From Amphiscolops sp. MND2022 (lineage: Eukaryota): DNA of 64,000 nucleotides. Shown here piece after piece: positions 5,377 through 28,538 of this stretch. Position numbers and translations under genes: made by a program. Each line of letters starts with the position of its first letter. Positions within the stretch are counted from its first letter, which is position 1. The stretch covers positions 50,096,001 to 50,160,000 of the forward strand of contig OZ076421.1 in assembly GCA_964187785.1 (NCBI GenBank). The letters run 5' to 3'. The notes under the pieces were generated by a model that worked only from the letters and a program-made list of their open reading frames with translations, made no database searches and was not told the DNA's origin.

Positions 5377-8300
5377 TGCAGAAGCTCGATCTATGAAGAG
5401 CACGTGCCATCAATGTGAATGACACTTTCAAACACTTTGGATCCAAAAGGTGAGTAGTATAGAAATTTGTTAGGTATACAACGGGGTGAGGCCCTCTCGG
5501 GGCCAACGGGGATGATCCGAATCCTTCACGGAATCCTTGAATTTGCGGTTTCACTGAGACGTAGCGCAAAGCGAAGCTTTTCACAGTGTCTGCGCAGACC
5601 GTGTCGCGACACAGAAAGGAACCGAAGTTCCTATTGGCACTCTCTGCTCGTTACCGATGTCCACGAAAGCCAGCTGAAGTGATTTCTAGTTGAAATTGAA
5701 AATAGAATCCGACAAAGAGAACAGTCAAAATAAAGGTGTGAAAGTAGACTTCAACAACGACTGACAGTCATGAAATTAGAAAACTCAAATTTCAACAGAA
5801 TCAAAAGGCCAAAAGACTCATTTTCATGCCTATAAACGAAAAGGACGAAAAATGAGAAAACCTCTTAATATCCGACTTCTCTCAGACGTGAATTGTAGAG
5901 GAGAATCCAAAAATAAGTAATCAGGGTACCACAACAAAAAATCATCTAGTCAAGATCAAAATTTACCTTTGCTTATATTGCAATTTCCACTTGAAAAAAA
6001 TCTCATCTCCTTACTCAACCAACTCACTTAGAATCTGAAGATGTCTCCCCCCAATTACGAACAGTATGAGCGAGGCCCCTCTATGCTAAGAAGAAGAGCA
6101 ATCAGCTCAATCCCAGAGTGCGATATCACGCCATAATAGTGGCTGAAGATGGAGCTGGTTTTTATTGCTTCTCAGACGCCAAAAAAGCTGGGCTGTTGAA
6201 AGAGCCGCGCCGTCAAAAACAACCCTTCGATGGCGCCAACTACAGCAGTCAGGTGGCGAAATGGCGGTATCTCAATCATCCGTCGCCCTGTTCCAAACGG
6301 TGGCGGCATCAACGAGACCCCATTGCTAAAAAAGTCTCGAACCTCATAGGCGACGATTGAAGTGCAAGTGTGAGAACTTGTACTGTTCTGAAATCTCCTG
6401 TAAAGCAACCACTCCTGGTGTCCTCCTAGTTGTTTTTTTCTTCATCGTGTGCTGGTGATTCACCGGTTTTGAGCTCGATCTGGGCCAATTTAGCAACTGT
6501 AGGAGCCACCGACATGGTTCATGGTAACGAGACCAAAGCTTCAAAAGCAAAGATTTCTCTAAGATTTTTTCCAGGATAGAAAATTGAGAAAGCTAAGCGG
6601 GGATTTTTTCTGAGATAAAATATGAATGAATTGACAAATAACTAAGATAAAAGACTTAGAGTGGCTTTTACGTGAAAATGAGAATGAATGATTGAAGATT
6701 CTGCCCAAAAAGTGAAAATTGTTATTTACAAAAAACTTGTCAACAAAAAGGCACATCAGTGAAGAATGAATTATGTACATATGTATAAATAACCAGACAT
6801 TTCAGTCAATGATTGGCATTATTTGTACCATTAATTACAATAAAATATTGCATGGTTATGTTATGCTAATAAACATATTCACAAAATGTACAATTCACCA
6901 ACAGAGTTTGAGTGAAGATTAAATGGATGTTAATATGGGGCGGCATAATATTAAAGGTGTATGAAAAAGTTGTATATAAGTAATATTCTGATTGACAACA
7001 TAAAATTGGTGGTCATGCATAAAAAACTGAGCCACCAAAACATCCTAATGCAGAAGCTCGATCTATGAAGAGCACGTGCCATCAATGTGAATGACACTTT
7101 CAAACACTTTGGATCCAAAAGGTGAGTAGTATAGAAATTTGTTAGGTATACAACGGGGTGAGGCCCTCTCGGGGCCAACGGGGATGATCCGAATCCTTCA
7201 CGGAATCCTTGAATTTGCGGTTTCACTGAGACGTAGCGCAAAGCGAAGCTTTTCACAGTGTCTGCGCAGACCGTGTCGCGACACAGAAAGGAACCGAAGT
7301 TCCTATTGGCACTCTCTGCTCGTTACCGATGTCCACGAAAGCCAGCTGAAGTGATTTCTAGTTGAAATTGAAAATAGAATCCGACAAAGAGAACAGTCAA
7401 AATAAAGGTGTGAAAGTAGACTTCAACAACGACTGACAGTCATGAAATTAGAAAACTCAAATTTCAACAGAATCAAAAGGCCAAAAGACTCATTTTCATG
7501 CCTATAAACGAAAAGGACGAAAAATGAGAAAACCTCTTAAGATCCGACTTCTCTCAGACGTGAATTGTAGAGGAGAATCCAAAAATAAGTAATCAGGGTA
7601 CCACAACAAAAAATCATCTAGTCAAGATCAAAATTTACCTTTGCTTCTATTGCAATTTCCACTTGAAAAAAATCTCATCTCCTTACTCAACCAACTCACT
7701 TAGAATCTGAAGATGTCTCCCCCCAATTACGAACAGTATGAGCGAGGCCCCTCTATGCTAAGAAGAAGAGCAATCAGCTCAATCCCAGAGTGCGATATCA
7801 CGCCATAATAGTGGCTGAAGATGGAGCTGGTTTTTATTGCTTCTCAGACGCCAAAAAAGCTGGGCTGTTGAAAGAGCCGCGCCGTCAAAAACAACCCTTC
7901 GATGGCGCCAACTACAGCAGTCAGGTGGCGAAATGGTGGTATCTCAATCATCCGTCGCCCTGTTCCAAACGGTGGCGGCATCAACGAGACCCCATTGCTA
8001 AAAAAGTCTCGAACCTCATTGGCGACGATTGAAGTGCAAGTGTGAGAACTTGTACTGTTCTGAAATCTCCTGTAAAGCAACCACTCCTGGTGTCCTCCTA
8101 GTTGTTTTTTTCTTCATCGTGTGCTGGTGATTCACCGGTTTTGAGCTCGATCTGGGCCAATTTAGCAACTGTAGGAGCCACCGACATGGTTCATGGTAAC
8201 GAGACCAAAGCTTCAAAAGCAAAGATTTCTCTAAGATTTTTTCCAGGATAGAAAATTGAGAAAGCTAAGCGGGGATTTTTTCTGAGATAAAATATGAATG

Positions 8301-8720
8301 AATTGACAAATAACTAAGATAAAAGACTTAGAGTGGCTTTTACGTGAAAATGAGAATGAATGATTGAAGATTCTGCCCAAAAAGTGAAAATTGTTATTTA
8401 CAAAAAACTTGTCAACAAAAAGGCACATCAGTGAAGAATGAATTATGTACATATGTATAAATAACCAGACATTTCAGTCAATGATTGGCATTATTTGTAC
8501 CATTAATTACAATAAAATATTGCATGGTTGTGTTATGCTAATAAACATATTCACAAAATGTACAATTCACCAACAGAGTTTGAGTGAAGATTAAATGGAC
8601 GTTAATATGGGGCGGCATAATATTAAAGGTGTATGAAAAAGTTGTATATAAGTAATATTCTGATTGACAACATAAAATTGGTGGTCATGCATAAAAAACT
8701 GAGCCACCAAAACATCCTAA
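5377..8720. repeat. 1672-bp direct tandem duplication at the left edge of the H3-like array
   Basis: 5377-7048 is repeated at 7049-8720; ORF pairs are offset by exactly 1672 (5467/7139, 6118/7790, 6559/8231). Confidence 0.95.
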
Positions 8721-11125
8721 TGAGTTTCATATTTGATTATGGCGGCCGTTTCCGTAGCTATCTTAACAGTTTCCAGTCTACTTTCGCTGAACCAAATTCG
8801 GTTTAGTTTCTGAACCCGGTAATGGTAAAAACAGAAAGTACTAGTCTTTCAAATGGAAGTTTTCTAATCGAAAGCTAAGTACTGTTCTGAAATCGCCTGT
8901 AACGCAACCACTCCTGGTGTCCTCCTAGTTGTTTTTTCCTTCATCGTGTGCTGGTGATTCACCGATTTTGAGCTCGATCTGGGCCAATTTAGCCACTGTA
9001 GGAGCCACCGACATGGTTCATGGTAAAGATACCATAGCTTCAGAAGCAAAGATTTTTCTAAGATTTTTTCCAGGATAGAAAATTGAGAAAGCTAAGCGGG
9101 GAATTTTTCTCAGATAGAAAAGGAATGAATTGACAAATAACTAATATAAATGACTTAGTGTGGCTTTTACGTGAAAATGAGAATGAATGAATGAAGATTC
9201 TGCCCAAAAAGTAAAAATTGTTATTTACAAAAAACTTGTCAACAAAAAGGCACATCAGTGAAGAATGAATTATGTACATATGTATAAATAACCAGTAAAA
9301 ATTTGACATTTCAGTCAAGGATTGGCATTATTTGTACCATTAATTACAATAAAATATTGCATGGTTATGTCATGCTAATAAACATATTCACAAAATGTAC
9401 AATTCACCGACAGAATTTGAGTGAAGATTAAATGGATGTTAATATGGGGCGGCATAATATTAAAGGTGTATGAAAAAGTTGTATATAAGTAACATTCTGA
9501 TTGACAACACAAAATTGGTGGTCATGCATAAAAAACTGAGCCACCAAAACATCCTAATGAGTTTCATCTTTGATTATGGCGGCCGTTTCCGTGGCTATCT
9601 TAACAGTTTCCAGTCTAATTTCGCTGAACCAAATTCGGTTTAGTTTCTGAACCCGGTAATGGTAAAAACAGAAAGTACTAGTCTTTCAAATGGAAGTTTT
9701 CTAATCAAAAGCTAAGTACTGTTCTGAAATCGCCTGTAAAGCAACCACTCCTGGTGTCCTCCTAGTTGTTTTTTCCTTCATCGTGTGCTGGTGATTCACC
9801 GGTTTTGAGCTCGATCTGGGCCAATTTAGCCACTGTAGGAGCCACCGACATGGTTCATGGTAAAGATACCATAGCTTCAGAAGCAAAGATTTTTCTAAGA
9901 TTTTTTCCAGGATAGAAAATTGAGAAAGCTAAGCGGGGATTTTTTCTGAGATAGAAAATGAATGAATTGACAAATAACTAAGATAGAGACTTAGTGTGGC
10001 TTTTACGTGAAAATGAGAATGAATGAAGATTCTGCCCAAAAAGTGAAAATTGTTATTTCCAAAATCTTGTCAACAAAAAGGCACATCAGTGGAGAATAAA
10101 TTATGTACATATGTATAAATAACCAGTAAAAATTTGACATTTCAGTCAAGGATTGGCATTATTTGTACCATAAATTACAATAAAATATTGCATGGTTATG
10201 TCATGCTAATAAACATATTCACAAAATGTACAATTCACCGACAGAATTTGAGTGAAGATTAAATGGATGTTAATATGGGGCGGCATAATATTAAAGGTGT
10301 ATGAAAAAGTTGTATATAAGTAATATTCTGATTGACAACACAAAATTGGTGGTCATGCATAAAAAACTGAGCCACCAAAACATCCTAATGAGTTTCATCT
10401 TTGATTATGGCGGCCGTTTCCGTGGCTATCTTAACAGTTTCCAGTCTAATTTCGCTGAACCAAATTCGGTTTAGTTTCTGAACCCGGTAATGGTAAAAAC
10501 AGAAAGTACTAGTCTTTCAAATGGAAGTTTTCTAATCAAAAGCTAAGTACTGTTCTGAAATCGCCTGTAAAGCAGCCACTCCTGGTGTCCTCCTAGTTGG
10601 TTTTTCCTTCATCGTGTGCTGGTGATTCACCGGTTTTGAGCTCGATCTGGGCCAATTTAGCCACTGTAGGAGCCACCGACATGGTTCATGGTAAAGATAC
10701 CATAGCTTCAGAAGCAAAGATTTTTCTAAGATTTTTTCCAGAATAGAAAATTGAGAAAGCTAAGCGGGGATTTTTTCTGAGAAAGAAAATGAATGAATTG
10801 ACAAATAACTAAGATAAAGACTTAGTGTGGCTTTTACGTGAAAAGGAGAATGAATGAAGATTCTGCCCAAAAAGTGAAAATTGTTATTTCCAAAAAACTT
10901 GTCAACAAAAAGGCACATCAGTGGAGAATAAATTATGTACATATGTATAAATAACCAGTAAAAATGTGACATTTCAGTCAATGATTGGCATTATTTGTAC
11001 CATTAATTACAATAACATATTGCATGGTTATGTCATGCTAATACATATTCACAAAATGTACAACTCACCGACAGAATTTGAGTGAAGATTTAAATGGATG
11101 TTAATATGGGGCGGTATAATATTAA
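6380..11125. repeat. ~835-bp tandem array with histone H3-like fragment, left arm
   Basis: The marker ctaatgagtttca recurs at ~8722, 9559 and 10390. The minus strand of each unit encodes KKTTRRTPGVVALQEI and, after a frameshift, [15 protein letters not shown]. Confidence 0.95.
8842..9014 (-). pseudogene. Histone H3-like (variant or CenH3-like) fragment, representative copy
   Basis: Reconstructed MSVAPTVAKLAQIELK...K.KTTRRTPGVVALQ(E/A)I / [15 protein letters not shown] versus canonical H3 [35 protein letters not shown]. It has frameshifts, a stop and a non-canonical N-tail. The end copy at ~27.97 kb reads [16 protein letters not shown] without the stop. Confidence 0.75.
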
Positions 11126-11154
11126 CATTACGACGCATATCCCTACACTTTTTG
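11126..11154 (+). repeat. Left terminal inverted repeat
   Basis: cattacgacgcatatccctacactttttg. Confidence 0.95.
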
Positions 11155-11156
11155 AA

Positions 11157-11575
11157 AACTGCGGAATTGACTGCTAACCGCAGGTAGCACCTACCAGACC
11201 TGGAATCCGCTGTTTAAAATGACGGATTTCAAAGACACACTTTATAACATGTGCAGCGGATTCCGCTTGCAATGTTTTCTGGATTCCGGGGACAAATCTC
11301 TTTACATTGAGTTTTTGGTGGAATTCAGAGGCATATATTATTATATTAGCAACAGTGGATTCCACAGTCGCTGTACCGGAATCCGGGGTCACATATTAAT
11401 ACACAGCATAAAATTAGTGGATTCCAAGGACAAGCTTTCGTAATGTAAAAGAAAAAACAGTGGAATCCACTGCTGCGACAGCGGATTCCGCAACAGCACC
11501 AGTGGATTCCGCTGTTGTGCAAGCGAATTCCGCAGTTTTTGACACCTGCTGTTTTTAACAGTGGATTCCACTGCA
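11157..11575. repeat. Left subterminal cluster of quasi-palindromic 11-mers (gcggattccgc / gtggattccac type)
   Basis: About 13 copies in mixed orientation. Confidence 0.9.
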
Positions 11576-11617
11576 AGATATCGCGAAATATGTACCTCGT
11601 TTAATCAGCACTTCTGA

Positions 11618-11823
11618 AGGCTCCAAACGTTTGAATTCAATGAAATTATCATAGTTTCTTATCATAGAACTAGATTAAAACACATCCAATTAAACACAAA
11701 ATACAGTAGTAGATTACGAGCAATACAGAAGTATGATACATATTTTAGTTTATCTCAGTAATCTTAATCCCAGAGACCATAGTAGAATACATAATGGAGA
11801 CAGTAATCTTAATCCCAGAGACA
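11618..11823 (+). repeat. 206-bp internal direct repeat, left copy
   Basis: aggctccaaa(c)gtttgaattcaatgaaattatc...cccagagaca, near-identical to 22301-22506 in the same orientation. Confidence 0.95.
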
Positions 11824-13295
11824 TTTGACCTTTACCGTATTTCGGTTGTAGACATACCAGCTATATTTACAAACATTAGATGTGGAGTTGCTACATCCAT
11901 TTATGTTATTGATGTAACCTAACTCAGTATACATTGTGATCAAAAGAGATACTATTTTAGAAACTCTATTCTTTTCATAGACTTAGTTAGAAATACAACA
12001 CTTACAACATTTATGTTTTAGGACCATTTGTATTCCTTCTGGTTCATCACCCATCAGCACACATCAAAGACACTTCAATGAATGACACACATAATTTGGA
12101 TTTGGCTGCACTATAGCCTTTTTAAATGTTCTAATTAATTAATTATTTCAAACTTGATAAATTTTAGTTGAATCAATTTTAGTCAATTTGTTCAAACGCA
12201 TTCAAAACTATGCGAACCTGGTGCAGCATATGCCATTTGATCTATAGTGATTTAAAGAATTTCTAAAATATTATTTAATTATAACAATTATAGTATTGAT
12301 TTGTAAGAATGTTATCAATACTTAACTTCATAATTTGTGCTGAGTTTTGGTAACAATTATATTGTGTCAAATGTGTTGTAATTAAGTTTTTGTATGCTTA
12401 TATTATCAATGAAGAAAAGAGCCAATTTCAGTCAATATTCAGTTGTCCGAACTTTGTAAAAAACAATCTTCTTTTACCATTCTTCTCTGTGTTTAAGAGA
12501 ATGCATTGTTTGTATTGATTCTGTAAAAATGTTATCAGTATTAACTTCATAATTTGTGCTAAATTTGTGTAACAAAAAGATTTTTGTAGCTGGCAAATTT
12601 TTTGATTCGTGACAGTTGCCGAGATATTTGATTTTCAGTTTGTCATTTTAAGCAATGAGGTTGCGATATTTTAGAACGCTACATTATATCTTGGTATATA
12701 TAATACGTGTCTAAAATGTGTCGGTAACTATAGCATCGCGCCGACCGTCATAAGCGGACTGGCGCCAATCTCACTCTTCTCTGCGTTTGAGAGAACGATG
12801 CATTGGTCACGTGACTGAAATTGTTCGATTTCAGAGTAAAATAAACAAACCGTTCTGACAGTGTGTGATTAGTTACTGCCAAGACAAGTTGCCCAGCTAT
12901 TGAATAATAACTCTCATTTGAACATTTGAAGATTCATAATCGAAATATATAATCTTTACAAAACTAGTTGAAGAATTCTCGAAGTCTTCTTACCAATCTT
13001 CTTTTGATCTTTACTAATTTAGTCTTCTTTTGATTCTAAATCAAGGTAAGTAACATTTATAATCTTCAACCTAATTGTCAAGATTATTTGAGGGAATCTC
13101 TGTATAGGATATTTAGTGTATTTTTGTATTTTTTTGTTTTCTATCAGAAGAGGATTTCGAGCGAAGTCATCGTTTTCAAGTGAACTTTTGCTCAACAATT
13201 CATAGGCTGCGGTGTCTTTTTCTAAAAGCTTTCCTCTGAAAATTGATCATTTTTCAAATGCAACATGCAAAAAGTTCATTCAGGCTCGACTAGGG

Positions 13296-13400
13296 TATAT
13301 ATATATATATATATTTATATATGTATACATATAAATACATATATAATCTGTAATAATCTGTAATTAGGATATATATAATCAGGATATATAATAATTAGGA
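13296..13400. repeat. (TA)n-rich microsatellite
   Basis: Runs of tatata, read directly. Confidence 0.8.
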
Positions 13401-13647
13401 TATATATTTGTCTCTGTATTAAGGATAAGATTCAAGAGAATCTCCGTATAAGATAGGTATATCTCTGTATTCAGAACAGGGCCGGGCTCATTTAAGGGAA
13501 TCTCTGTATTTGAGATAAATATTTGTCTCTGTATCTCAACTCAAAAAAGAAATTGAAACTTGTAGGTTTTAGCTGAACAAACACTTGACTAGGTTACTAA
13601 ACGATCCAAAATAGAATGTATAAAATGGCAGTTCTACAAGCAAAGAG

Positions 13648-14291
13648 TTATTCGGTAAAAAGTTCTTGGGCTGTCTTATCACCGTAATCGAAACGTAGTT
13701 GCTCGAAGGGTTCTATCTGTCGTCTAGCCTTCATTACTGCGATTCTCACAGGGGGATCTGTATAGTCCAAGAGGATGCTAGTAGACTTCATGTTGGCTTC
13801 TCTGTTATCAGCGTTGTTTTTTCTCTGGGTCGCGTGGTTGGCTAAACGACCCATACCTAAACGACATAACGAAATTGTAGAAATTTTTAATCTTACAACT
13901 CTAAAGATAAAACATTATTATTATTACATAAATTTGTTGGATGATCCACACAAATCTCGGAACTGGCATCTATAAGTCGCTTTGGTGGACCTGCTACTTC
14001 CATGACAAACTCGCTCGTAACGTCGGGTTGCTGCACGTACTCATCGAACTTCTGGCCGGTAATGACTTTCCCGTGGTAGTCTACAATTATTGTGTCTTTC
14101 TCCAGTTTTCCTAGACTGACAATGCCTCGACCGAATTTAGTGAAATGGGCATCGCAAATCCATTCCCACTTTTGGTTGTCAATTCGGTCTTTTAAACTCA
14201 TCTGGTTTTCGTATGACAACCTGTCTCCTTTGCAGATGATTGGATTGAACTGAGGCCTGCTTATACTGGTCCGTGATGATGTGCTCTTCAT
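13648..14291 (-). CDS. SET8/PR-Set7 (KMT5A)-like SET domain; last two exons (14291-13928, 13856-13648) of the minus-strand cargo gene
   Basis: Motifs GRG, DYHG, LIDAS, RLANHA and EQLRFDYG are all present. A 71-bp GT-AG phase-1 intron (13927-13857) joins HPTNLC to MGRLANH. There is no post-SET Cys cluster, as in SET8. Confidence 0.88.
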
Positions 14292-14523
14292 CTATACAAA
14301 ACACAGAGCATCCAAACGCAATGATTTTTTCTAATAACCATCGATCACTTAGCATTGGGCAGCTCCAGACAGGCAAAACACTTCTTTAGTTGCTTACCAT
14401 ATGGCACCAAAACAAATGATTTTTTTGCCCCATTCGATTTTCGATTTGTGCCATTGGGAAATTTTACCGTAATCTAATACACTGCAATCTAAAAAACTCG
14501 AACGCGACGTAACCCAACCTAAC

Positions 14524-14757
14524 CTGTTTTAAAGCTATAGTCATCGTTTTCTTGATGTCGCATTTGTCCCAGCCCATCCTCGCATAAAAGGTGTTCAGGC
14601 GCTGCTCCATATCACTGCAGTTTGGCAGTAACCAACCATTGTTCTTGATCCAATGTTGCGCTCTAATTGTTTGCCGATGGTACCGTAATTGGTCAAGTCT
14701 GTGTTTCACTGCCTTGGAAACCTCTTTGTGGGAATACTTTTCTGTCTGACTTTTCAC
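14524..14757 (-). CDS. Exon of the same gene (linker with RAQHWIKNNGW motif)
   Basis: Acceptor tttttag at 14758, donor cag|gttagg at 14523; 234 nt, phase 0 at both ends, in frame with the SET exons. Confidence 0.65.
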
Positions 14758-14851
14758 CTAAAAAAGAATTTCCATTCCTTTGTTGAAAGCGAAAGCTTAG
14801 AAAGTCAATATTTTATTACCAAACGAAAAAGAACAAAACCTGATTGATTAC

Positions 14852-15573
14852 TTGCTTCTGTTTGCCAATGGTGAAACCTGGATCGCTTCGAAACGGCAGA
14901 AAACTCGCAACATGTCTTTCTAGGGTGGTCTCATGGGGGTTATCGATGTGCTGCTGAAGCTAAAATACGCAAACTTAGGTAAACCCTGGAAACATTTGAA
15001 GCAATTTAGGTGTTTCTAGATTGAAGTTTAAGTTTTTACCGTGTCTTTGAATTGGTCGCATAGTTGGCGCACTTTGAAATGGGTTGAGCCATTGGAATTG
15101 ACGAAAAAGCGGTAAGTTCTCACTGTTCTTTCGTCATCTGCGAAAACCCTGGTGAAAACATCAAGACCTTCTTTTGGCAGGAAGTGCGGTCTTGCCTCCA
15201 GGTAGTATGTTTTCAAACCGTCCACTACCCATCGAGGAACAGTGTGCGACGATCTTATCGGAGAAAATTCAGCAGGCTCAACATAGATTGTGGTTCCTGC
15301 TGCAACTGCTGTTTCATCGTCTGTGTCCTCTTGTAAGGAAACGATGGCCTGTGTAACAGCATGCACTGTCAGCTCTATGATACCTTTGTCCATCATTGGT
15401 GGTGATGCATGCTTTGAGAGGAAACACGCCAAAGCACGAAAGAGCATTGTTCTTTGCTTTTGTGTCAGAGCTTCCGTTGTCTTGTACTGCTCTACAATGT
15501 CCCTGATGGCTATCTCAAGTTCTTCTTCAGTCGTCTCGCCACAAGTAACCCTGATAGAAGTCTTCGATATTTT
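14852..15573 (-). CDS. Exons (15573-15040 and 14959-14852) encoding a degenerate tyrosine-recombinase-like region
   Basis: ALACFLS...GIIELTVHAVTQA, LKTYYLEARP...FFVNSNG and ERHVASFL recall the YR domains fused to SET in animal mobile elements. The catalytic R, K, HxxR and Y residues are not evident. Both exons are phase 0 and open. Confidence 0.5.
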
Positions 15574-15847
15574 CTAAATATATTGAATACAAATTTCAAA
15601 AACAACTTCAAAAATTAGAATGAAAGTCAAATAATACTCAACAAGTTCAATCACAAATTCATATGCAAATTGGTTTTCAAATTCAAACACAAAATGAATT
15701 TTAAAATCTGGGAAATATGAAGTTTTTCTTGAGAGTTTTTTTCTTGAAAGTAAAGCTGAAAGAAAATGGAAATCCGTCACCGCTCAGCCAAGGCGGCAGC
15801 TGGAAATTTTCTTGAGGTATGGTACCGAAAACTGAAATCACAATGTA

Positions 15848-15965
15848 TTAGCATTTGTCTGCGGATTCCGCTGCACATGTGTTAACATTTGCTCCTAAAT
15901 TCCGCAACGCTCTTTTGGAAGTCAATGATATGAAACATAAGACAGCGGATTCCGCTGTTATGATG
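15848..15965 (-). repeat. Inverted, diverged copy of the 215-bp unit at 17.1-17.6 kb, inside an intron of the SET gene
   Basis: Its reverse complement matches cataacagcggaa.ccgctg...gcggaatttagg...atgttaa.acatgt.cagcggaatccgcag. Confidence 0.75.
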
Positions 15966-16055
15966 AACAAACTTGTTTTCGTGCTCTATGTGGTTCTAGA
16001 AGGTGAAAATCTCCCGCTTCAGTTTGAAATTTTCAATTGAAATTCAAAAACTGAC

Positions 16056-16496
16056 CTCCGGAATATCAATTGTTGATCTTTTAGGGCTAGTTGCTCTTTT
16101 CCGGCTTTCTTCAAGTTGCTCAGTCGACGAAGCTTCAAGCGGAGGAAGAAAAAGGTCCGGCGAGTGTTCAGGTGGTGGAAGAATTTCACCAAACATGTTC
16201 GGAGGAAGTTCGTGCGAAGTTCCATCCATGTTGAGCCATTGCGATTGATTCCAATCAAAATATGACGGTTGTGAATATTGTCGAACTGCAGCCGGACTCT
16301 TTCCGGTAGGGGTAGTCAAATATTCATGCGATCGTGAGAGAGGGGTTAATGATGGAACTGGAGGAGGAGGTAGTGTAAGTGTAAACGTCTCGGGTTGCAC
16401 TGGCGTTGAGGTAACTAGTTGAGGCGATTGAAGTTCTGTCAAATTTCCAAGATCTTCTAATGGTTGTGACTGAATTTGATGCGTTTGCAGAGACAT
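16056..16496 (-). CDS. Pro/Ser/Thr-rich first coding exon of the SET gene
   Basis: Open frame MSLQTHQ...IDIPE ending at the phase-0 donor gag|gtcagt. It joins in frame to the exon starting at 15573. The full six-exon model is about 629 aa with no stops. Confidence 0.6.
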
Positions 16497-16649
16497 TGTA
16501 GGTTTTTTCGAGAAATAGAACGATGTACAATTCAAATTGACTGATTCCTAGTAGATCAAAATTATATTATGAATAGTATTATGAATAGTATTATAATACT
16601 ACTGAAACTGCTAATTACTTAACTGCTTATTGCTACCATAGTAATTTAA

Positions 16650-16799
16650 CACTTCCACTTTGACAAATTAAAAAAAGCCTCATCAGACGCTGCCAATGAA
16701 AATAACTGTAATTATATAATTATAATGATTATAATTTTATAATTATTTCTATTATAATTTTTGGCAGCGCCTGATGCGGTTCTTAATCATTTGGAAGTG
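16650..16799. mobile_element. 150-bp MITE with TTAA flanks (piggyBac-like)
   Basis: TTAA|CACTTCCA...TGGAAGTG|TTAA, with inner inverted arms catcagacgctgccaa / ttggcagcgcctgatg around an AT-rich core. Confidence 0.7.
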
Positions 16800-17084
16800 T
16801 TAAAACCACACCTCATATATCATTTGACTTGAGTCATTAGCACTTTTTCTCATTGTTCGTTCTTTGGCCCGAAAGAATGCCCGACAAGTTTTCATCAGGA
16901 CTTGAAAGATGAATGCGTGAAACACATGTATCTTGGATTGGCCGAATGACACTCATATGAATAAAACCCTATCTATAACAATGAAATACAATCTATGTTA
17001 CACAATCTAGAACAACATTGAGCACCAAACGATTTTTTCCTCATAACAACAAAATGTTTTATACTCCATATTATTGCCTCCCAA

Positions 17085-17640
17085 AGAAACAGTGCGGAAT
17101 TTAAGGACAAATTTTATTACATGTACAGCGGAATCCTCAGACAAATGTTAATACATTGCCATTTAAGTTTCCTGTACAATACCTGAAGAAAATTTTCAAA
17201 AATGCTTAGTAGCATAAAACAGTGGATTCCGTGGTTAGCGAGAGGGATGCGCCTCATAACAGCGGAACCCGCTGTTTTGTATTCCAGATTGATGCCTTCC
17301 AAAATCGCAGTGCGGAATTTAGGGACCTATGTTAATACATGTACAGCGGAATCCGCAGGCGAATGTTAATACATTGCGATTTCGATTTCCTGTACCATAC
17401 CTCAAGAAAATATCCAAATATGCTTAGTAGCATAAAACAGTGGATTCCGTGGTTAGCGAGAGTGATGCGCCTCATAACAGCGGAACCCGCTGTTTTGTAT
17501 TCCAGATTGATGCCTTCCAAAATCGGAGTGCGGAATTTAGGGACCTATGTTAATACATGTACAGCGGAATCCGCAGGCAAATGTTAATACATTGCGATTT
17601 CCATTTCATGTACCAGACCTCAAGAAAATATCCAAATCTG
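17085..17640. repeat. 215-bp tandem repeat (~2.5 copies) built from the subterminal gcggaatccgc motif
   Basis: ORFs at 17117 and 17332 are offset by 215; the motifs are shared with the element ends. Confidence 0.85.
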
Positions 17641-19429
17641 CTCAGTAGCATGAAACTGTGTTTAGGAATTTTATTTTTTTGAACCCTCTCTTGAAAATGC
17701 ATTTTGGGACCAGTAATCTCAAATTTCCCAGGTTGAAATCCTAATTAACTAGAAGTCAAGTAGAATCTCTTAAGATTCTATCAGTGTCTATATGTCTGTA
17801 GTTGTCTTATAAGCGCCTATAAAAGTGCCTAAACTCGTCTACTGAAGCTTTTGTGATCCGTTCCTCCAAGGTGGCTGGGGAGTCGTCGCAGGGTACTTGG
17901 GAGCAGTCGCTCATTCCGAAACCCAGAGAAATGTCATTTAGAGATTGAAACTTTCATCTAACGAGAATACAGTATGCTCAGGCGCAGTTGGTGCAGTGAG
18001 ATCAAATCGAATAAAGTAAATATCACGTAAAGTTGCTTCAGTAACAGTTTCCGTTGGACATTTGCGATTGCAACATCTGCCTACTAACTTGTGCATTGTG
18101 TCATGATTGCATGTATGACTGATGCATATCTCTGGAAGTAGGAAAAGTAACAGCACGCGCGGCATGTAAGACTGATGCTTACCTCTGGATTTAGGAAAAG
18201 TATCTGTAATCTCTTGAAAACTAAGATCAAATGCTATTGAAGTATTTATTTTCCAACCTCTGCAATTATGACCTTGATTGTAGGAAATTGTATTTGGCCT
18301 AAAAATTTTTTGTTTGAAGGTTCTCTCTGGAAATATGCCCCAATTTCAATGCCCCACGTGCCAACTGACCCTCTCAAATAAGGGTAATCTAACCCGGCAC
18401 ATGAATCAGAGTTGCGGTAAGAGAGAGCAGACGCGCAGCACAAGAATGAAGTGCATGTTTTGTGGCTCTCCTACAGATGGCTCCTTCTTCAAGGACGTGC
18501 AGCAGACTGCTGATCATGTGCTGACACTCCGATGCTGGAATGCTCGAAATGAACTAACAGCGGAAGATCGGGCCAAATTACTGGAGCCCACACTGGAAAA
18601 CTTTGTTCTCGTAAGAGACACCTACCCGGGCTGCAAGAAGGCCTTCTCGGCAGAAGGGAGGACGAGGAAGTTCTTTAATCAACCGCCACCATCTAAGTTG
18701 GTTAAACGAGAAGTCCAAGTCCGAGAAACCAGTGCGACATCATGTGGGAGGTAATTCAAATGGGAGGACACACCCTGGTGGGAGGTAATTCAATCAAACA
18801 AATATATTTAATAAAAACGTAGCTTATGGGCATGAATAAGAATTAAGTCATAGGTTCTGTTTGATTTTGAATGATTCACATTTTTGAGTTCAAATGATTT
18901 ATTTTTGAACAGGTTCCGGAAATCAGCAGTCCTGTGGAGCCTGAGCCTGTTTCCTCCTCTTCCACCCTCCATTTTGCAACAGAGGCAGAAGAAGTTATTG
19001 TGGAAGAGTTTGTTGTTCTTCTGGAGGACAAGCGAGAAGAAGAGGCAATCGCTTCCATGGTAGCTTTGGAAGCCTTCAAGATTGCAGAAGTCAACCACAT
19101 TCAAGTTGAAGAGCCCAAATGTGTATGTATTTTTTGAATGACTGTTTCATGTTTCATGTAATATTTTTCGGGATGTGTAATTTTTATGGATTTCTAGTTT
19201 CAAAAGCATAATGGTTTGGAGGGATTTAAACTTCTAAAACCGATAATGCTTTAGGAAAAGTGGCAACAGAAACGACGACGTTTGCACAAGAGTGTATCAC
19301 GAATGCCAGCGACACTTCCAAACCTGACCAGATGTACGCTTACCATGCGAAGGATGAACATGACGAACACGAACCTCATGAAATCGTTTGCTAGCATCTG
19401 GGAACTACGTGACCTTATGAGTCAAGTAA

Positions 19430-19620
19430 GAACTTCTCTGGATTTAAGAATGAGATCTCTTCTCAGGATCTTAGAATGCAATCTCTTCTCCGGACTCTAG
19501 ATCTAATCGGTTTTGAGTCTCTGGATTCACGAATAAGATATCTTCTTTAGACTTAAATCTCTGGTTTTAAGAATTAGGTCTTTTCTCTAGATATAAATCT
19601 CTGGATTGACGAATAAGGTT
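19430..19620. repeat. Degenerate intronic minisatellite (tctctggatt.a.gaat)
   Basis: About 5 imperfect copies in a JmjC gene intron. Confidence 0.6.
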
Positions 19621-21042
19621 TTGACTTCTGTGTAATGTAACATGGAGTAAATTTAGATTCCAAATGCTACCTCGATGCGGCGTGACATAACAGCAGGAGA
19701 AGTCACACCAGAACTGCTGTCAGACCCTGCTTTTTTGGACGGGGAATATGTCTTCGTCATCCGTGACGGTTTGGCCATCCCCGGCTTCAACACGAAGCTA
19801 ACCAGAGAGAAGATGTGCCGAATGTCGTCTGTTCAACAAATGATGCAGAATTACACTGGCAACCCCGTAACACTTCGTTATTTGACGACGAAGTTCGAGG
19901 TTAGGAGAGTCAATGGAACTGCTAAAAGAGATACAAACAAAAATTTTGTTCTCTGTTATAAATTTGAGAATACATGTACCTGACCTGATATTTATTATTT
20001 AGGAAGGGAAGAAAGTTGTGCCAGGTAACAGAGTTACCGAGATGATGGAGAGTGACCCCCCCAAATTCTTCAACGTCATCGATGCCGAGGCAAACAAGTG
20101 CCCAGGAGCCTCTTTCAAGAAGCCTAGCTTTCTAGACGAGGTTTCCCTTGGGCACATGAACTGGGAACAGACACCTGAAGAATTGCGTCCAGTGCGTGAA
20201 TCGAATTATTTGCTGATTTCACAAAATGGCGCAATCACGAGGTTCCACCAGGATTTTTCATCCACAAGTGTCTTGTATTATCTGGCCAAAGGTTGGTAAC
20301 AAGTTTTAGTACAAGTAAAATGAAAATCGTGTTTTTTTTAAATAAGTCAAGTGTTGGTGGTTGACGGACTATTGTTACAGGAGTTAAAGTTTTTCATGTT
20401 GTGAGGCCCACTGCCAGAAACGTTGACTTGTTCAAGGCGTTCAAGAATCTCCCCAGGCAAGTAAAATTGTTTATACTTACACTACACAGTGCTTTTCTCT
20501 CTGTTATGCATGTAAGACTGATAACCGGGACAAATTTATTACTGTTATTGATTGTTTAGAAGAGACCTCTTTTTTGGCACCCATGAAGAGCTTGACATGG
20601 GCGGCTGCGCAAAGTCACAAAAGGACAAGCGTGCCATTGACTTGCGCTCCGTGCACAAACGGCATTCTTGTTAAAGGCAAGAAGGCTTTGGACAGAGGAG
20701 GATACCTATGCACTATTGAAATGCTGGAGTACGTCATTTCAAGGAAGAAAGCATTTGTCAGTTTGACATGGGATGAAAGTGCGGACTTCACTAGCAGAGT
20801 TCCAGCGTCTTCAGTAAGGCTCCCGGAAGAAAATTACACAGCATTGGACCCCGTGAGTCTAGACAGCATGGTTTGCCCCATTGATCGAGCATATGCAGTA
20901 TTTTCTGCCATCAAGCGGGCCATAGGTCTTTGTCGAAGAAAACATTCTGCGAGTTTCAATGTGTGCCCCGCAACACCTTTCACCAGGCGATGTGTTGGAT
21001 TCGAAGCAGATTCAGCTCGGGATAATGTACGTATTTCAGAAT

Positions 21043-21315
21043 AAAATTGGTCAATTAAGAAGATCATTAAGTAATTGTTAACTAAGAGCATTGAAGCAAT
21101 TCAAGATGATCGTTTTTTGAGTTCATGTTATTGTTTAGTTCAGATTTGCTGCTCATATTGAAACTGGACTCAAAGTGAAAACAAAATTGGTCAATTAAGA
21201 AAATCATTAATTATTTGCTAACTAGGAGTAATGAAACAATTCAAGATGATCGTTTTTTGAGTTCATGTTATTGTTTAGGTCAGATTTGCTGCTCATATTG
21301 AAACTGGACTTCGCG
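21043..21315. repeat. 140-bp tandem duplication spanning an intron/exon boundary
   Basis: aaaattggtcaattaagaa...atattgaaactggact at 21043 and 21183. Confidence 0.85.
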
Positions 21316-21659
21316 GCTGCCATCGCTCGTGGGACTCACTCTTTGGAGAGCGGTGGGACATCTTGCCAGGAGACGGAGAAGAGTCGCTGGACACCCTCAT
21401 CAGAGCAATCCGATTCTCTGAGACGCAAGACTTTCTCTTCCGAACCATCAAGGTTCAAATAAACTCTTGCGAAGGACGCTTCCGAAATGAAGAAAAATAT
21501 CGGGAAATCCTCAATATCAACTCTAAACTTAATGAGGGTTTCTTATAAATGAGGGTTTCTTATAAACTTTATAAACATAAAGAATATATGTTCATGTGTG
21601 TATAATCATGTGTGTATTTGTATTATTATTAATACTGCTAGCATCAAATAATAAATCAA

Positions 21660-21990
21660 GATTAGAATCAAGATCATTTATCCTAATCCCAGAGAAAATA
21701 GTAGAGTACATGTTGTTTTTAGTAGCATGTAGGCCTTTAATACATAATTGAGACAGTAATTTTAATCTCAGAGACAATAGTTGTATACATGTAGTATTAA
21801 TAGCATGTAGGCTTATTATACATAATCCTAACCCCAGAGACAAAAGTAGCATACATGTAGTAATAATAGCATGTAGGCCTATAATAAATACATAATGGAA
21901 ACAGTAATCCTAATCCAAGAGGCTTTAGTAGAATACATTCAGGCCTATAATACATCAAGGAGACACAGTTATCTTAAACACAGAAATTGT
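21660..21990. repeat. Degenerate repeats related to the 3' part of the 206-bp direct repeat
   Basis: Recurring cagtaatc(c/t)taatcccagaga.a..agtag..tacat motif. Confidence 0.65.
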
Positions 21991-22142
21991 ATACACCCTG
22001 TAGAGGTTTCAGACAATGTATATTAATTAGTCGGCTTTTATTTCATGGTTGTATTGTGTCATTGATGCTCATTTATTAATACCTGCCAATTTAGTGCAGA
22101 TGAAGAATTGTCTTCGAAAAGAGAGTACAAAATAGTTAGAGT

Positions 22143-22506
22143 AAAGTTTGAATTCAATGAAATTATCATAGTTTCTTATCATAGAACTAGATTAAAACAC
22201 ATGCAATTAAACACAAAATACAGTAGTAGATTACGAGCAATACAGAATTATGATACATATTTTAATTTATCTCAGTAATCTTAATCCCAGAGACCATAGT
22301 AGGCTCCAAAAGTTTGAATTCAATGAAATTATCATAGTTTCTCATCATAGAACTAGATTAAAACACATCCAATTAAACACAAAATACAGTAGTAGATTAC
22401 GAGCAATACAGAATTATGATACATATTTTAATTTATCTCAGTAATCTTAATCCCAGAGACCATAGTAGAATACATAATGGAGACAGTAATCTTAATCCCA
22501 GAGACA
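22143..22506 (+). repeat. 206-bp internal direct repeat, right copy (22301-22506), preceded by a partial tandem copy (22143-22300)
   Basis: Direct alignment by eye to 11618-11823. Confidence 0.95.
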
Positions 22507-22509
22507 ACA

Positions 22510-22990
22510 GTGGATTCCATACATGAAGGCCTATAATACATCAAGGAGACTTGTTTATCCTAAACCCAGAAACTGTATACGCCCTATTAAACACAATAAT
22601 AAAGGTATACAGCAAGCTTTATACTAGCCTGCGCTCGTCTGCGGATTCCGCTGTCATACAACTTGAAACAAATGTCACGCAGAGCTGTCAGTGGATTCCG
22701 CTTCACAAAACAAACATTTTATTACTTGCTTGCATTAGTCTCCGGAATCCGCTGACACTGCCCCGGATTCCGCTGGTACTGGTCCGGATTCCGCTGTCAC
22801 TGCCCCGCAATCCGCTGCAAGCAGTGGATTCCACGATTTCGAGCTGACCAATGCAGCGGATTCCGCGATTTTGCCTTTTCGTCAACTGAAATCGCGAGAA
22901 ATTATACACTGCGGTATTTGTCCCTGAATTCCACGCGGCGAATTTCGCTCTTTGCGGTTGGCATGTTTTAAAGCTTGGCCCAGGATTCCA
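22510..22990. repeat. Right subterminal cluster of quasi-palindromic 11-mers
   Basis: About 11 copies of gcggattccgc / ccggattccgc / gtggattccac. Confidence 0.9.
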
Positions 22991-23019
22991 CTGCTCAAAC
23001 GGCTCAACTTTGATCTGCA

Positions 23020-23048
23020 CAAAAAGTGTAGGGTTATGCGTCGTAATG
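23020..23048 (-). repeat. Right terminal inverted repeat
   Basis: caaaaagtgtagggttatgcgtcgtaatg is the reverse complement of the left TIR with one mismatch. Confidence 0.95.
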
Positions 23049-26000
23049 AAAGGTGTATGAAAAAGTTGTATATAAGTAATATTCTGATTGACAACATAAA
23101 ATTGGTGGTCATGCATAAAAAACTGAGCCACCAAAACATCCTAATGAGTTTCATGTTTAATTATGGCGGCCGTTTCCGTAGCTATCTTAACAGTTTCCAG
23201 TCTAATTTCGCTGAACCAAATTCGGTTTAGTTTCTGAACCCGGTAATGGTAAAAACAGAAAGTACTAGTCTTTCAAATGGAAGTTTTCTAATCGAAAGCT
23301 AAGTACTGTTCTGAAATCGCCTGTAAAGCAACCACTCCTGGTGTCCTCCTAGTTGTTTTTTCCTTCATCGTGTGCTGGTGATTCACCGATTTTGAGCTCG
23401 ATCTGGGCCAATTTAGCTACTGTAGGAGCCACCGACAGGGTTCAAGGTAAAGATACCATAGCTTCAGAAGCAAAGATTTTTCTAAGATTTTTTCCAGGAT
23501 AGAAAATTGAGAAAGCTAAGCGGGGATTTTTTCTGAGATAGAAAATGAATGAATTGACAAATAACTAAGATAAAGACTTAGTGTGGCTTTTACGTGAAAA
23601 TGAGAATGAATGAAGATTCTGCCCAAAAAGTGAAAATTGTTATTTCCAAAAAACTTGTCAACAAAAAGGCACATCAGTGGAGAATAAATTATGTACATAT
23701 GTATAAATAACCAGTAAAAATTTGACATTTCAGTCAAGGATTGGCATTATTTGTACCATAAATTACAATAAAATATTGCATGGTTATGTCATGCTAATAA
23801 ACATATTCACAAAATGTACAATTCACCGACAGAATTTGAGTGAAGATTAAATGGATGTTAATATGGGGCGGCATAATATTAAAGGTGTATGAAAAAGTTG
23901 TATATAAGTAATATTCTGATTGACAACATAAAATTGGTGGTCATGCATAAAAAACTGAGCCACCAAAACATCCTAATGAGTTTCATCTTTGATTATGGCG
24001 GCCGTTTCCGTAGCTATCTTAACAGTTTCCAGTCTAATTTGGCTGAACCAAATTCGGTTTAGTTTCTGAACCCGGTAATGGTAAAAACAGAAAAGAATAG
24101 TCTTTCAAATGGAAGTTTTCGAATCAAAAGCTAAGTACTGTTCTGAAATCGCCTGTAAAGCAACCACTCCTGGTGTCCTCCTAGTTGTTTTTTTCTTCAT
24201 CGTGTGCTGGTGATTCACCGATTTTGAGCTCAATCTGGGCCAATTTAGCCACTGTATGAGCCACCGAATGGTTCATGGTAAAGATACAATAGCTTCAAAA
24301 GCAAAGATTTTTCTAAGATTTTTTCCAGGATAGAAAATTCAAAGCTAAGCGGGATTTTTTCCGAGATAGAAAATGAATGAATTGACAAATAACTAATATA
24401 AAAGACTTGACGTGGCTTTTACGTGAAAATGAGAATGAATGATTGAAGATTTTGCCCAAAAAGTGAAAATTGTTATTTACAAAAAACTTGTCAACAAGAA
24501 GGCACATCAGTGGAGAATAAATTATGTACATATGTATGAATAACTAGTGAAAATTTGACATTTCAGTCAATGATTGGCATTATTTGTACAATTAATTACA
24601 ATAAAATATTGCATGGTTATGTCATGCTAATGAACATATTCACAAAATGTACAATTCACCGACAGAATTTGAGTGAAGATTAAATGGATGTTAATATGGG
24701 GCGGTATAAGATTAAAGGTGTATGAAAAAGTTGTATATGAATAAAATTCTGATTGACAACATAAAATTGGTGGTCATGCATAAAAAACTGAGCCACCAAA
24801 ACATCCTAATGAGTTTCATCTTTGATTATGGCGGCCCTTTCCGTAGCTATCTTCACAGTTTCCAGTCTAATTTCGCTGAACCAAATTCGGTTTGATTCCT
24901 GAACCCGGTAATGGTAAAAACAAAAAGTACTGGTCTTTCAAATGGAAGTTTTCTAATCGAAAGCTCAGTACTGTTCTGAAATTTCCTGTAAAGCAACCTT
25001 TCCTGGTCTCCTCCTAGTTGTTTGTTTCTTTATCGTGTGCTGGCGATTGACCAGTTTTGAGCTCGATCTGGGCCAAATTAGCCACTGTAGGAGCCACCGA
25101 CATGGTTCATGGTAAAGATACCATAGGTTCAAAAGCGAAGATTTTTTTAAGATTTTTTCCAGGATAGAAAATTGAAAGCTAAGCGGGGATTTTTTTTGAG
25201 ATAGAAAATGAATGAATTGACAAATAACTAATATAAAAGACTTGGCGTGACTTTTACGTGAAAATGAGAATGAATGATTGAAGATTTGGCCCAAAAAGTG
25301 AAAATTGTTATTTACAAAAAACTTGTCAACAAAAAGGCACATCAGTGAAGAATAAATTATGTACATATGTATAAACAACCAGTAAAAATTTGACATTTCA
25401 GTCAATGGTTGGCATTATTTGTACCAATATTTACAATAAAATATCGCATGGTTATGTCATGCTAATAAACATATTCACAAAATGTACAATTCACCGACAG
25501 AATTTCAGTGAAGATTAAATGGATGTTAATATGGGGCGGTATAAGATTAAAGGTGTATGAAAAAGTTGTATATGAATAAAATTCTGATTGACAACATAAA
25601 ATTGGTGGTCATGCATAAAAAACTGACCCACCAAAACATCCTAATGAGTTTCATCTTTGATTATGGCGGCCCTTTCCGTAGCTATCTTCACAGTTTCCAG
25701 TCTAATTTCGCTGAACCAAATTCGGTTTGATTCCTGAGCCCGGTAATGGTAAAAACAAAAAGTACTGGTCTTTCAAATGGAAGTTTTCTAATCGAAAGCT
25801 CAGTACTGTTCTGAAATCTCCTGTAAAGCAACCTTTCCTGGTGTCCTCCTAGTTGTTTGTTTCTTTATCGTGTGCTGGCGATTCACCGGTTTTGAGCTCG
25901 ATCTGGGCCAAATTAGCCACTGTAGGAGCCACCGACATGGTTCATGGTAAAGATACCATAGGTTCAAAAGCGAAGATTTTTCTAAGATTTGTTGCAGGAT

Positions 26001-27262
26001 AGAAAATTGAGAAAGCTAAGCGGGGATTTTTTCTGAGATAGAAAATGAATGAATTGACAAAAAACTAATATAAAAGACTTGGCGTGGCTTTGACGTGAAA
26101 ATGAGAATGAATGATTGAAGATTTTGCCCAAAAAGTGAAAATTGTTATTTACAAAAAACTTAACAAAAAGGCACATCAGTGAAGAATAAATTATGTACAT
26201 ATGTATAAATAACCAGTAAAAATGTGACATTTCAGTCAATGGTTGGCATTATTTGTACCATTAATTACAATAAAATATTGCATGGTTATGTCATGCTAAT
26301 AAACATATTCACAAAATGTACAATTCACCGACAGAATTTCAGTGAAGATTAAATGGATGTTAATATGGGGCGGTATAAGATTAAAGGTGTATGAAAAAGT
26401 TGTATATGAATAAAATTCTGATTGACAACATACAATTGGTGGTCATGCATAAAAAACTGAGCCACCAAAACATCCTAATGAGTTTCATCTTTGATTATGG
26501 CGGCCCTTTCCGTAGCTATCTTCACAGTTTCCAGTCTAATTTCGCTGAACCAAATTCGGTTTGATTCCTGAACCCGGTAATGGTAAAAACAAAACGTACT
26601 GGTCTTTCAAATGGAAGTTTTCTAATCAAAAGCTCAGTACTGTTCTGAAATCTCCTGTAAAGCAACCTTTCCTGGTGTCCTCCTAGTTGTTTGGTTCTTC
26701 ATCGTGTGCTGGCGATTCATCGGTTTTGAGCTCGATCTGGGCCAAATTAGCCACTGTAGGAGCCACCGACATGGTTCATGGCAAAGATACCAAAGCTTCA
26801 AAAGCAAAGACTTTTCTAAAAACTTTTCTAGGAAAGAAAATTGAGAAAGCTAAGCGGGGAATTTTTCTGAGATAGAAAATGAATGAATTGACAAATAACT
26901 AATACAAAAGACTTGGCGTGGCTTTTACGTGATAGTGAGAATGAATGATTGAAGATTTTGCCCAAAAAGTGAAATTTGTTATTTACAAAAAACTTGTCAA
27001 CAAAAAGGCACATCAGTGAAGAATAAATTATGTACATATGTATAAATAACCAGTAAATATTTGACATTTCAGTCAATGATTGGCATTATTTGTACCATTA
27101 ATTACAATAAAATATTGCATGGTTATGTCATGCTAATAAACATATTCACAAAATGTACAACTCACCGACAGAATTTGAGTGAAGATTAAATGGATGTTAA
27201 TATGGGGAGGAAAAAGATTAAAGGTGTATGAAAAAGTTGTATATAAGTAATATTCTGATTCT

Positions 27263-27601
27263 AAGACTGCCCTTCCATCCCCAAAAGCTAAAATCCCTAG
27301 AAAGCTCAAAAGTCACGTAGTCTATCAAATAAAGTGTCCTGGATGCCAATCCAGCTACGTCGGGCAAACCACCCGCCACCTGTCTACGAGGATTAGAGAG
27401 CACTCGAGGAAATCTAGTAATGTGGGAGAACACCTGTTTCACTGTGGGGTGGCACTGACAGAAGATAATGTGAAGAAAATAGACAGCAGCAGCAGCTACA
27501 GCAAACTTTTGACCTTAGAGGCCCTTCACATATCAAAAGAGAAGCCTAAAATCAACACGAAGGAAGAATACAGATCACGCGAACTTACCTTGAGGGTCTA
27601 A
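27263..27601 (+). CDS. GIY-YIG endonuclease C-terminal fragment of a Penelope-like element (not in the ORF track; no start codon)
   Basis: KTALPSPKAKIPRKLKSHVVYQIKCPGCQSSYVGQTTRHLSTRIREH...GEHL...LLTLEALHISKEKPKINTKEE...* (113 codons, open). Confidence 0.9.
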   Translation, partial: KTALPSPKAKIPRKLKSHVVYQIKCPGCQSSYVGQTTRHLSTRIREHSRKSSNVGEHLFHCGVALTEDNVKKIDSSSSYSKLLTLEALHISKEKPKINTKEEYRSRELTLRV

Positions 27602-27698
27602 TAAACATCTTCTTTGTCGCAATTTAGTTGCCTAGATAAATGATAACTGTATAGTCTTTCCGTTGATTTTGAATGATTGTTTTAGAATATTTTAAGAT

Positions 27699-27729
27699 CT
27701 GATGATGACACATTGTGTCGAAAACGTTC
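27699..27729 (+). ncRNA. Minimal hammerhead-ribozyme-like motif in the Penelope 3' end
   Basis: CTGATGA-t-GACAC att GTGTC-GAAA-ACGT-TC: core boxes, a 5-bp stem II, a palindromic AACGTT stem III and a UUC cleavage triplet. Stem I is weak and there is one extra U after the CUGAUGA box. Confidence 0.5.
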
Positions 27730-28538
27730 ATTGATAATAAAAAGTTTTCAACATTCTGATTGACAACATAAAATTGGTGGTCATGCATAAAAAACTGAGC
27801 CACCAAAACATCCTAATGAGTTTTATCTTTGATTATGGCGGCCCTTTCCGTAGCTATCTTAACAGTTTCCAGTCTAATTTCGCTGACCCAAATTCGGTTT
27901 AGTTCCTGAACCCGGTAATGGTAAAAACAGAAAGAACTAATCTTTCAAATGGAAGTTTTCTAATCAAAAGCTCCGTAATGTTCTGAAAACAGTTATGACC
28001 AAAAAACGCAAAATAGACATAAACAACGCAACAACACGCGAAAATGGTAAAGTCACTACTTGAGCAGCCTGATGTCTTCAAAAACCTCGTTTTACTGCTA
28101 AAATCTACACTACACATTCTGGGGTACATAATGAGTGACAAAAATGAGTAAAATTTTGTTGAAATCAATTTTCACTGTGATCCCAGGCTTCCTCTGGTAC
28201 CAGTCATAATCGTGTTTTCGAGTAACATGTGCCGCACTGGTTGCCTCTTCAAAAGGGGGCGGTTGATGAGTAGGTTGTAGTGGAAAGAATGACGTGCGTC
28301 GATTGGGGACAAAAAATAATTTTATGAAAAAATTGAAGGAAAAAATTTTTCCACGAATAGTAACTATGGACTTCTCAATGTTAAGTGAAAGAGTACCAAA
28401 CCGGGTGCTGGACTGACTTCGCAGCTTCTAATACAGTTCTTCTAGCGTTCCTTCAAGTAAAATAGGGTGGTATTACTTGTCTTTTTGCGAGTACATTACC
28501 ATCTCCCCAAAGGGAGATAGAATGTACTCAACTGTTCC

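Follow-up and report, generated by a model that had tools for sequence, protein, structure and literature searches.

Why every unit of a tandem repeat should carry a scrap of histone H3, and whether that scrap serves any purpose there, is the question raised by a 64-kb stretch of the Amphiscolops sp. MND2022 genome (G000:C13:50096001-50160000; hereafter the window, to which all coordinates without a contig name refer). Three head-to-tail arrays lie side by side in the window, with units of 832 bp (array A), 1344 bp (array B) and 889 bp (array C). An earlier note on this DNA, made from the letters alone, had taken array A for a satellite built from a divergent H3-like gene fragment. The H3-like part of each 832-bp unit amounts to only ~109 bp, found on the minus strand in every unit. 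It stems from exon 1 of an intact H3 variant gene on another chromosome (contig C1), and is quite probably a dead passenger relic without a histone-related function.

When the unit at 23303-24134 was used as a blastn query, array A resolved into eight full and three partial units, which are spaced 827-837 bp apart and are 92-98% identical to one another. This agrees with the roughly ten units of ~835 bp, each with minus-strand H3-like peptides, that had been described beforehand. The tblastn query was the canonical H3 of the same genome, taken from its 3.63-kb histone repeat. Every unit matched it on the minus strand over H3 residues 37-52 and, in another frame, over residues 53-75, the best match reaching 81% identity over 21 residues (copy 26590-26704). 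Both peptide halves are read in part from the same nucleotides, QEI and RRF/RKF being two readings of one stretch. The break between the halves is an 8-nt deletion common to all copies, which accounts for the frameshift that the earlier note had reported as shared among the units. An in-frame TAG is present in five of the eight full copies. Sequence corresponding to helices alpha2 and alpha3 was looked for in the units and is absent from all of them, as had been noted, and nothing homologous was found past the residues RLV. The complete fold (alpha1-loop1-alpha2-loop2-alpha3) in an open frame is therefore missing from the fragment. Array A was also scanned for Rfam families and tRNA, and none were found.

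A search of the genome with the repeat peptide, which had been proposed as the way to an intact parent, led to a locus on contig C1 that outscores all canonical H3 copies among the matches listed. The genome searches score the best candidates only, and very divergent extra copies could be missed. The parent gene (G000:C1:39790649-39793518, minus strand) is intact and comprises two exons and 156 codons over ~2.9 kb. Exon 1 extends from C1:39793518 down to ~39793214 on the minus strand and is followed by an intron of ~2.4 kb, with the donor AAA/GTGAGT and the acceptor TTTAG/G, while exon 2 ends at ~39790649 with the C-terminus DYYSI. The N-terminal tail of the parent is 16 residues longer than that of H3. 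Exon 1 shares 48% identity with H3, and exon 2 shares 78% identity with canonical H3. Loop 1 has 13 residues compared to 11 in H3, and a Trp replaces Phe84; protein length, loop 1 and the Trp were read by eye across the splice, and the database searches were run with each exon separately. The derived motifs GVVALQEI and QNST are common to the parent exon 1 and the repeat, whereas canonical H3 has GTVALREI and QKST.

The closest relatives of the parent are an unnamed ENA protein that is 75% identical over exon 1 and a second unnamed ENA protein that is 59% identical. Its nearest named relative is an acoel protein, “Histone H3.3-like type 2” of Convolutriloba macropyga, which has 155 residues and a DYYTI-type end. 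The SNRNP200 gene is located just upstream of the parent, both here and on the contig of the closest relative. Since this neighbourhood is conserved in two genomes, the parent is a host gene rather than transposon cargo. The parent resembles CenH3 (CENP-A) in its longer N-tail, which is divergent in both length and sequence, in two extra residues in loop 1 (on the splice joined by eye), in the Trp at Phe84 and in an altered hydrophobic C-terminus. It differs from CenH3 in its H3.3-like alpha2-alpha3 region, for which the best solved relatives are H3.3 chains and not CENP-A, and which thus has no divergent alpha2 targeting domain. It also differs in an H3-like QTARK-type motif at the start of the tail, conserved in the relatives, and in the retained Gln of the PFQRLV motif. 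The CenH3-type character that the earlier note had raised as a possibility holds for the tail, loop 1, the Trp and the C-terminus, but not for alpha2-alpha3. Judged from its sequence, the parent may be the CenH3 of its lineage or a conserved H3.3 derivative. The two genome searches able to reveal a second, more divergent CenH3 candidate gave 150 listed matches each, almost all of them canonical H3 copies. This conserved and previously unannotated H3 variant, distinguished by its long tail, its extended loop 1 and an end of the DYYSI/DYYTI type, is arguably more interesting than the repeat that led to it.

A profile of the units searched with nhmmer matched the parent exon 1 over 117 nt with a score of 65.5 bits (E 1.4e-20), compared to 13.8 bits (E 1e-5) at the H3.3 locus (C7:46.57 Mb) and 6.9 bits (E 1e-3) for canonical H3. 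Both of the latter were rejected as sources. The blastn match to canonical H3 is only 20 nt long, and DNA similarity between the two is almost nil. These comparisons support the derivation of the fragment from the divergent H3 variant and not from canonical H3 or H3.3, and its description as a fragment of an H3-variant pseudogene was well founded. Together with the tblastn matches, the profile score also places the fragment in the histone H3 family by significant homology. That the resemblance to H3 arose by chance is scarcely credible. Such a reading could point to how weakly the best peptide matches Pfam Histone (E 0.017; 15.8 bits, where the cut-off is 26.4 bits), but it leaves both the DNA profile match and the presence of the variant's derived residues in the repeat unaccounted for.

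The captured piece corresponds to 117 bp of exon 1, or parent residues 50-88, which take in the alphaN helix and the beginning of alpha1. Its limits are identical in all copies, both in the window and at a second locus on contig C8 (gene-segment positions 730/747 to 841/846 in blastn of the 4-kb gene region). A fuller copy of the fragment was sought at C8, where all copies were found to have the same limits. No homology was detected beyond the piece in local alignments upstream or downstream, which scored 8 and 12, respectively, against 9.7 ± 1.3 and 11.7 ± 1.6 for shuffled sequences. The stretches on either side of the piece had looked by eye like the parent's tail, exon end or intron, and were rejected as such on these scores, which equal those of the shuffles. 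The upstream peptide (“MSVAPTV...”) that had been read as a non-canonical tail lies in a third reading frame and, as it shows no homology above shuffles, is a translation of unrelated upstream sequence.

These limits also bear on the proposal that the array marks a former cluster of variant genes, that is, whole H3-variant genes in tandem that have since decayed. The canonical histone genes of the same genome do occur in tandem arrays with units of 3.62-3.63 kb, which offers a precedent for such a cluster. However, the homology stops at the same two points within exon 1 rather than at gene boundaries, neither the tail nor the intron nor exon 2 has left a trace in any unit, and the 832-bp unit is shorter than the ~2.9-kb gene. 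A decayed cluster is accordingly very improbable, and the proposal was not borne out: 117 bp of exon 1 were captured once, and the parent is a single gene with conserved synteny on a different chromosome.

The 8-nt deletion is found in eight of eight complete copies in the window and in six of six on C8, where several copies lack 3 further nt. The same limits and the same deletion in all copies indicate a single capture event. Variable sites among the copies number 16, 13 and 14 at codon positions 1, 2 and 3, respectively, and this even spread indicates neutral decay of a repeat without coding constraint. Compared with the parent, the repeat's majority sequence has 2, 4 and 13 differing sites at the three codon positions. 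When these differences were polarised with the ortholog of the relative, six changes fell in the parent lineage, all six at third positions, and 2, 3 and 6 changes at positions 1, 2 and 3 fell in the repeat lineage, although synonymous sites may be partly saturated against the outgroup. The repeat-lineage changes are spread roughly evenly, with a third-position excess that consists of G/C to A/T changes, partly at CpG. Changes confined to third positions, as in the parent lineage, are the pattern that purifying selection would leave. The current copies are 75-82% identical to the parent. The resemblance of their peptide to H3 persists owing to strong conservation of the source gene and the only moderate age of the copy, and not to selection on the repeat.

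The earlier note had also proposed a role as a small-RNA source, which would here be piRNA- or siRNA-like (PIWI-interacting or small interfering RNA) and act in trans on the transcript of the H3 variant. The fragment has been amplified ~11-fold in a single orientation, and a block of three private arrays with a transposon insertion resembles small-RNA clusters in its anatomy. In addition, over 24 nt, some copies differ from the mRNA by a single mismatch and one C8 copy is identical to it. In the window array, however, the longest exact matches to the parent mRNA extend over just 11-14 nt at an overall identity of 75-78%, the decay is even over the codon positions, and the fragment shows no sign of greater conservation than its flanks. 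A small-RNA source is improbable on this balance, and the repeat would matter more only if its small RNAs acted on the variant gene.

Unit A was found in the genome only in the window and at C8:19.975-20.010 Mb among the matches listed, and with two loci it is not a genome-wide satellite. Depths in read contigs (contigs of four public runs from one sample) were 18-65 for a unit-specific 88-nt unitig and ~200-1300 when summed over the unit. The ratio of ~5-25 fits tens of copies and not a collapsed large satellite. The term satellite therefore applies to array A in so far as it is repeated head to tail with regular spacing and high identity, but not in the sense of a high copy number in long arrays, usually on several chromosomes, since array A consists of ~11 units and the fragments on C8. 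At the latter locus (G000:C8:19975000-20010000), the one further site of the H3-variant scrap among the matches listed, tandem repeats of ~2.1-4.2 kb combine, in shuffled order, pieces of A, B, C and the B-C spacer, and the same 109-nt H3 piece occurs in them in two different unit contexts. Unit A is itself a mosaic, with low-copy dispersed sequence matching its central portion on C3, C9 and other contigs.

The neighbouring arrays are of similar make-up. Array B (28534-44478) comprises ~12 units of 1344 bp, some of them with a 463-bp replacement. Unit positions 84-556 of array B are a 475-bp dispersed repeat that most large contigs carry, with identities of 78-94%. No tRNA was predicted by ARAGORN in its first two units (28534-31000). 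Array C consists of ~21 units of 889 bp that extend from 46153 to ~1 kb beyond the window end, and it carries a weak SET-domain scrap (e.g. 48906-49106, plus strand). Outside the arrays, the nearest relative of this scrap is at C6:40718008-40718187, where it is fused to a long terminal repeat (LTR) retrotransposon RNase H in an open frame of 264 codons and adjoins a JmjC-like open reading frame (ORF). The SET ORFs of an 11.9-kb element inserted in array A were considered as another source of the scrap, and show no similarity to it; the relative on C6 belongs to a different transposon copy. Inverted repeats flanking the whole A-B-C complex were looked for and none were found. To judge from their sequence, the arrays appear to be mosaics assembled from repeat debris and amplified locally, in which the H3-variant scrap would be one tile.

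The preferred explanation, a passenger relic, would require three steps. A 117-bp piece encoding residues 50-88 would have been copied once into unrelated non-coding sequence, after which the loss of 8 nt would have broken the reading frame. The piece would then have been amplified as a passenger together with its host sequence, by local tandem duplication on C13 and as a mosaic repeat on C8. The initial capture could be explained by filler DNA at a repaired break or by transposon transduplication. In the latter case the arrays would be amplified transposon interiors, which is compatible with a functionless fragment. Transduplication fits the mosaic make-up of unit A, the repeat material in the adjacent arrays (the 475-bp repeat in B and the SET scrap in C, whose C6 relative lies beside a JmjC-like ORF) and the two unit contexts of the H3 piece on C8, and the capture of H3 by a hAT transposon has been documented in fungi (PMC6710886). 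However, neither terminal repeats nor a target-site duplication surround the fragment, the unit or the array complex, and no dispersed transposon copy with the H3 piece occurs elsewhere among the matches listed. Capture by a transposon is a rather doubtful origin. Helitron-like ends were also considered at the unit junction, where inspection revealed no fitting 5′ TC or 3′ CTRR.

Several observations do not sit easily with a passenger relic. The two ends of array A lie at nearly the same phase of the unit, to within ~16 nt, and both are in the H3 piece, something that passenger amplification does not predict. This shared phase would fit an array seeded when short direct repeats recombined, or one left by a circular multimer that had re-integrated. 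The presence of a SET scrap in an adjacent array and of SET-like cargo in the inserted transposon may mean that the clustering of chromatin genes is no coincidence, and the exact 24-nt match of one C8 copy to the parent mRNA also counts on this side. A more elaborate alternative, which we consider quite improbable, is that the three private arrays, with their mosaic counterpart on C8, act as a trap that generates small RNAs, has gathered chromatin-gene scraps and through them tunes or silences the cognate genes in trans. The scraps in question would be those of the H3 variant, with its CenH3-like features, in array A and, in array C, of a SET-domain methyltransferase derived from transposons that carry chromatin genes. 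If true, the locus would be one of host-versus-transposon chromatin conflict that also touches a host histone variant. Weighing these points, we infer that the repeat most likely has no histone-related function.

Among known systems, array A resembles local macrosatellites, or tandem segmental arrays, that are composed of mosaic repeat debris. It shares with them units of 0.8-1.3 kb, tens of copies, identities of 92-98%, a restriction to one or two loci, later transposon insertions and other arrays on its flanks. There is no difference in kind, and the sole special feature here is the recognisable exon scrap. In the Su(Ste)/Stellate system of Drosophila, the repeat units retain long and highly similar stretches of the target gene and produce piRNAs. 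The repeat described here is similar in comprising tandem non-coding relics of a host gene away from the parent, but its relic is just 109 nt long and 75-78% identical to the parent. From the literature on satellites that contain H3 or CenH3 scraps, only one relevant case emerged, in Dothideomycete fungi, where transduplicated H3 sequences were multiplied by a hAT element (Dhillon et al., 2019; PMC6710886). The fungal copies have an identified carrier, number in the hundreds, are dispersed and have been rendered inactive through repeat-induced point mutation (RIP; PMC6710886). In both cases, a coding piece of H3 was copied from an intact parent under purifying selection, multiplied as a passenger and is decaying. 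Unlike the fungal copies, those described here are ~11 + 6 in tandem at two loci, are 117 bp in extent and stem from an H3 variant rather than canonical H3. The repeat provides a datable example of a histone-variant exon scrap within a young, locus-specific tandem repeat. For annotation, the H3-like matches in array A should not be regarded as genes. The features of array A are listed in Table 1.

Table 1. Features of array A and its interruptions, in window coordinates; unit boundaries are from blastn with unit 23303-24134.
Feature	Position	Strand	Remarks
Array A, left block	6380-11125		Partial unit 6380-7050; units starting at 8052 (to 8878), 8879 (to 9715), 9716 (to 10546) and 10547 (to 11125)
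Array A, right block	23046-27990		Match 23046-23302; units starting at 23303 (to 24134), 24135 (to 24965), 24968 (to 25800), 25803 (to 26634) and 26637 (to 27260); match 27750-27972
Dispersed repeat X, left flank of array A	5377-6379		Recurs at 7049-8051
Dispersed repeat X, second copy, within array A	7049-8051		Part of the 1672-bp duplication
11.9-kb transposon	11126-23048		Inserted into one unit of array A, not part of the repeat; terminal inverted repeats
490-bp insert in the last unit	27261-27749		Unrelated to the unit; single occurrence in the window
Fragment, 5′ half	6392-6447	-	Truncated at the left array edge; tblastn, blastn
Fragment, 5′ half	8064-8119	-	Copy from the 1672-bp duplication; tblastn, blastn
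Fragment, complete (109 nt)	8833-8946	-	8-nt deletion, in-frame TAG; tblastn, blastn
Fragment, complete	9670-9783	-	tblastn, blastn
Fragment, complete	10501-10614	-	tblastn, blastn
Fragment, complete	23257-23370	-	tblastn, blastn
Fragment, complete	24094-24202	-	tblastn, blastn
Fragment, complete	24922-25035	-	Second half without stop, frameshift retained; tblastn, blastn
Fragment, complete	25757-25870	-	tblastn, blastn
Fragment, complete	26590-26704	-	Best peptide match to H3; tblastn, blastn
Fragment, 3′ half	27941-27988	-	At the right array edge; tblastn, blastn

Array A has been interrupted by three later events, namely the insertion of the 11.9-kb element, the 490-bp insert and a 1672-bp duplication. 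The last of these is a very recent tandem duplication (99.6% identity) at the left array edge (5377-8721), and unites dispersed repeat X, of which there are dozens of copies, with the initial 670 bp of an A unit. At the opposite edge, the last unit is broken by the 490-bp insert, and the array ends within the H3 piece.

The 11.9-kb transposon splits an array A unit at unit positions 576-580. It is bounded by terminal inverted repeats of 29 bp (11126-11154 and 23020-23048) that begin with CATTACGACG, and it has subterminal direct repeats of 206 bp (11618-11823 and 22301-22506). It carries ORFs with weak SET-domain matches (13648-14291, minus strand), one with a C2H2 zinc finger (18314-18754) and another that is JmjC-like (20018-20299). 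Read-contig depths of 25,000-74,000 at its ends point to great abundance of the family or, at the least, of its termini.

Canonical histone genes are found elsewhere in the genome in long tandem arrays with periods of 3621 and 3633 bp, located on C67, C33, C4:21.12 Mb and many small contigs. The canonical H3 has unusual alpha2 residues (STAIMALQEASESYLVS); single substitutions or a two-residue deletion occur in a few of its copies. At G000:C8:45872596-45873643 (minus strand), a canonical H3 is normal up to residue 85 and continues in frame into reverse-transcriptase-like sequence within an ORF of 336 codons, the apparent result of a non-LTR retrotransposon insertion in a histone gene.

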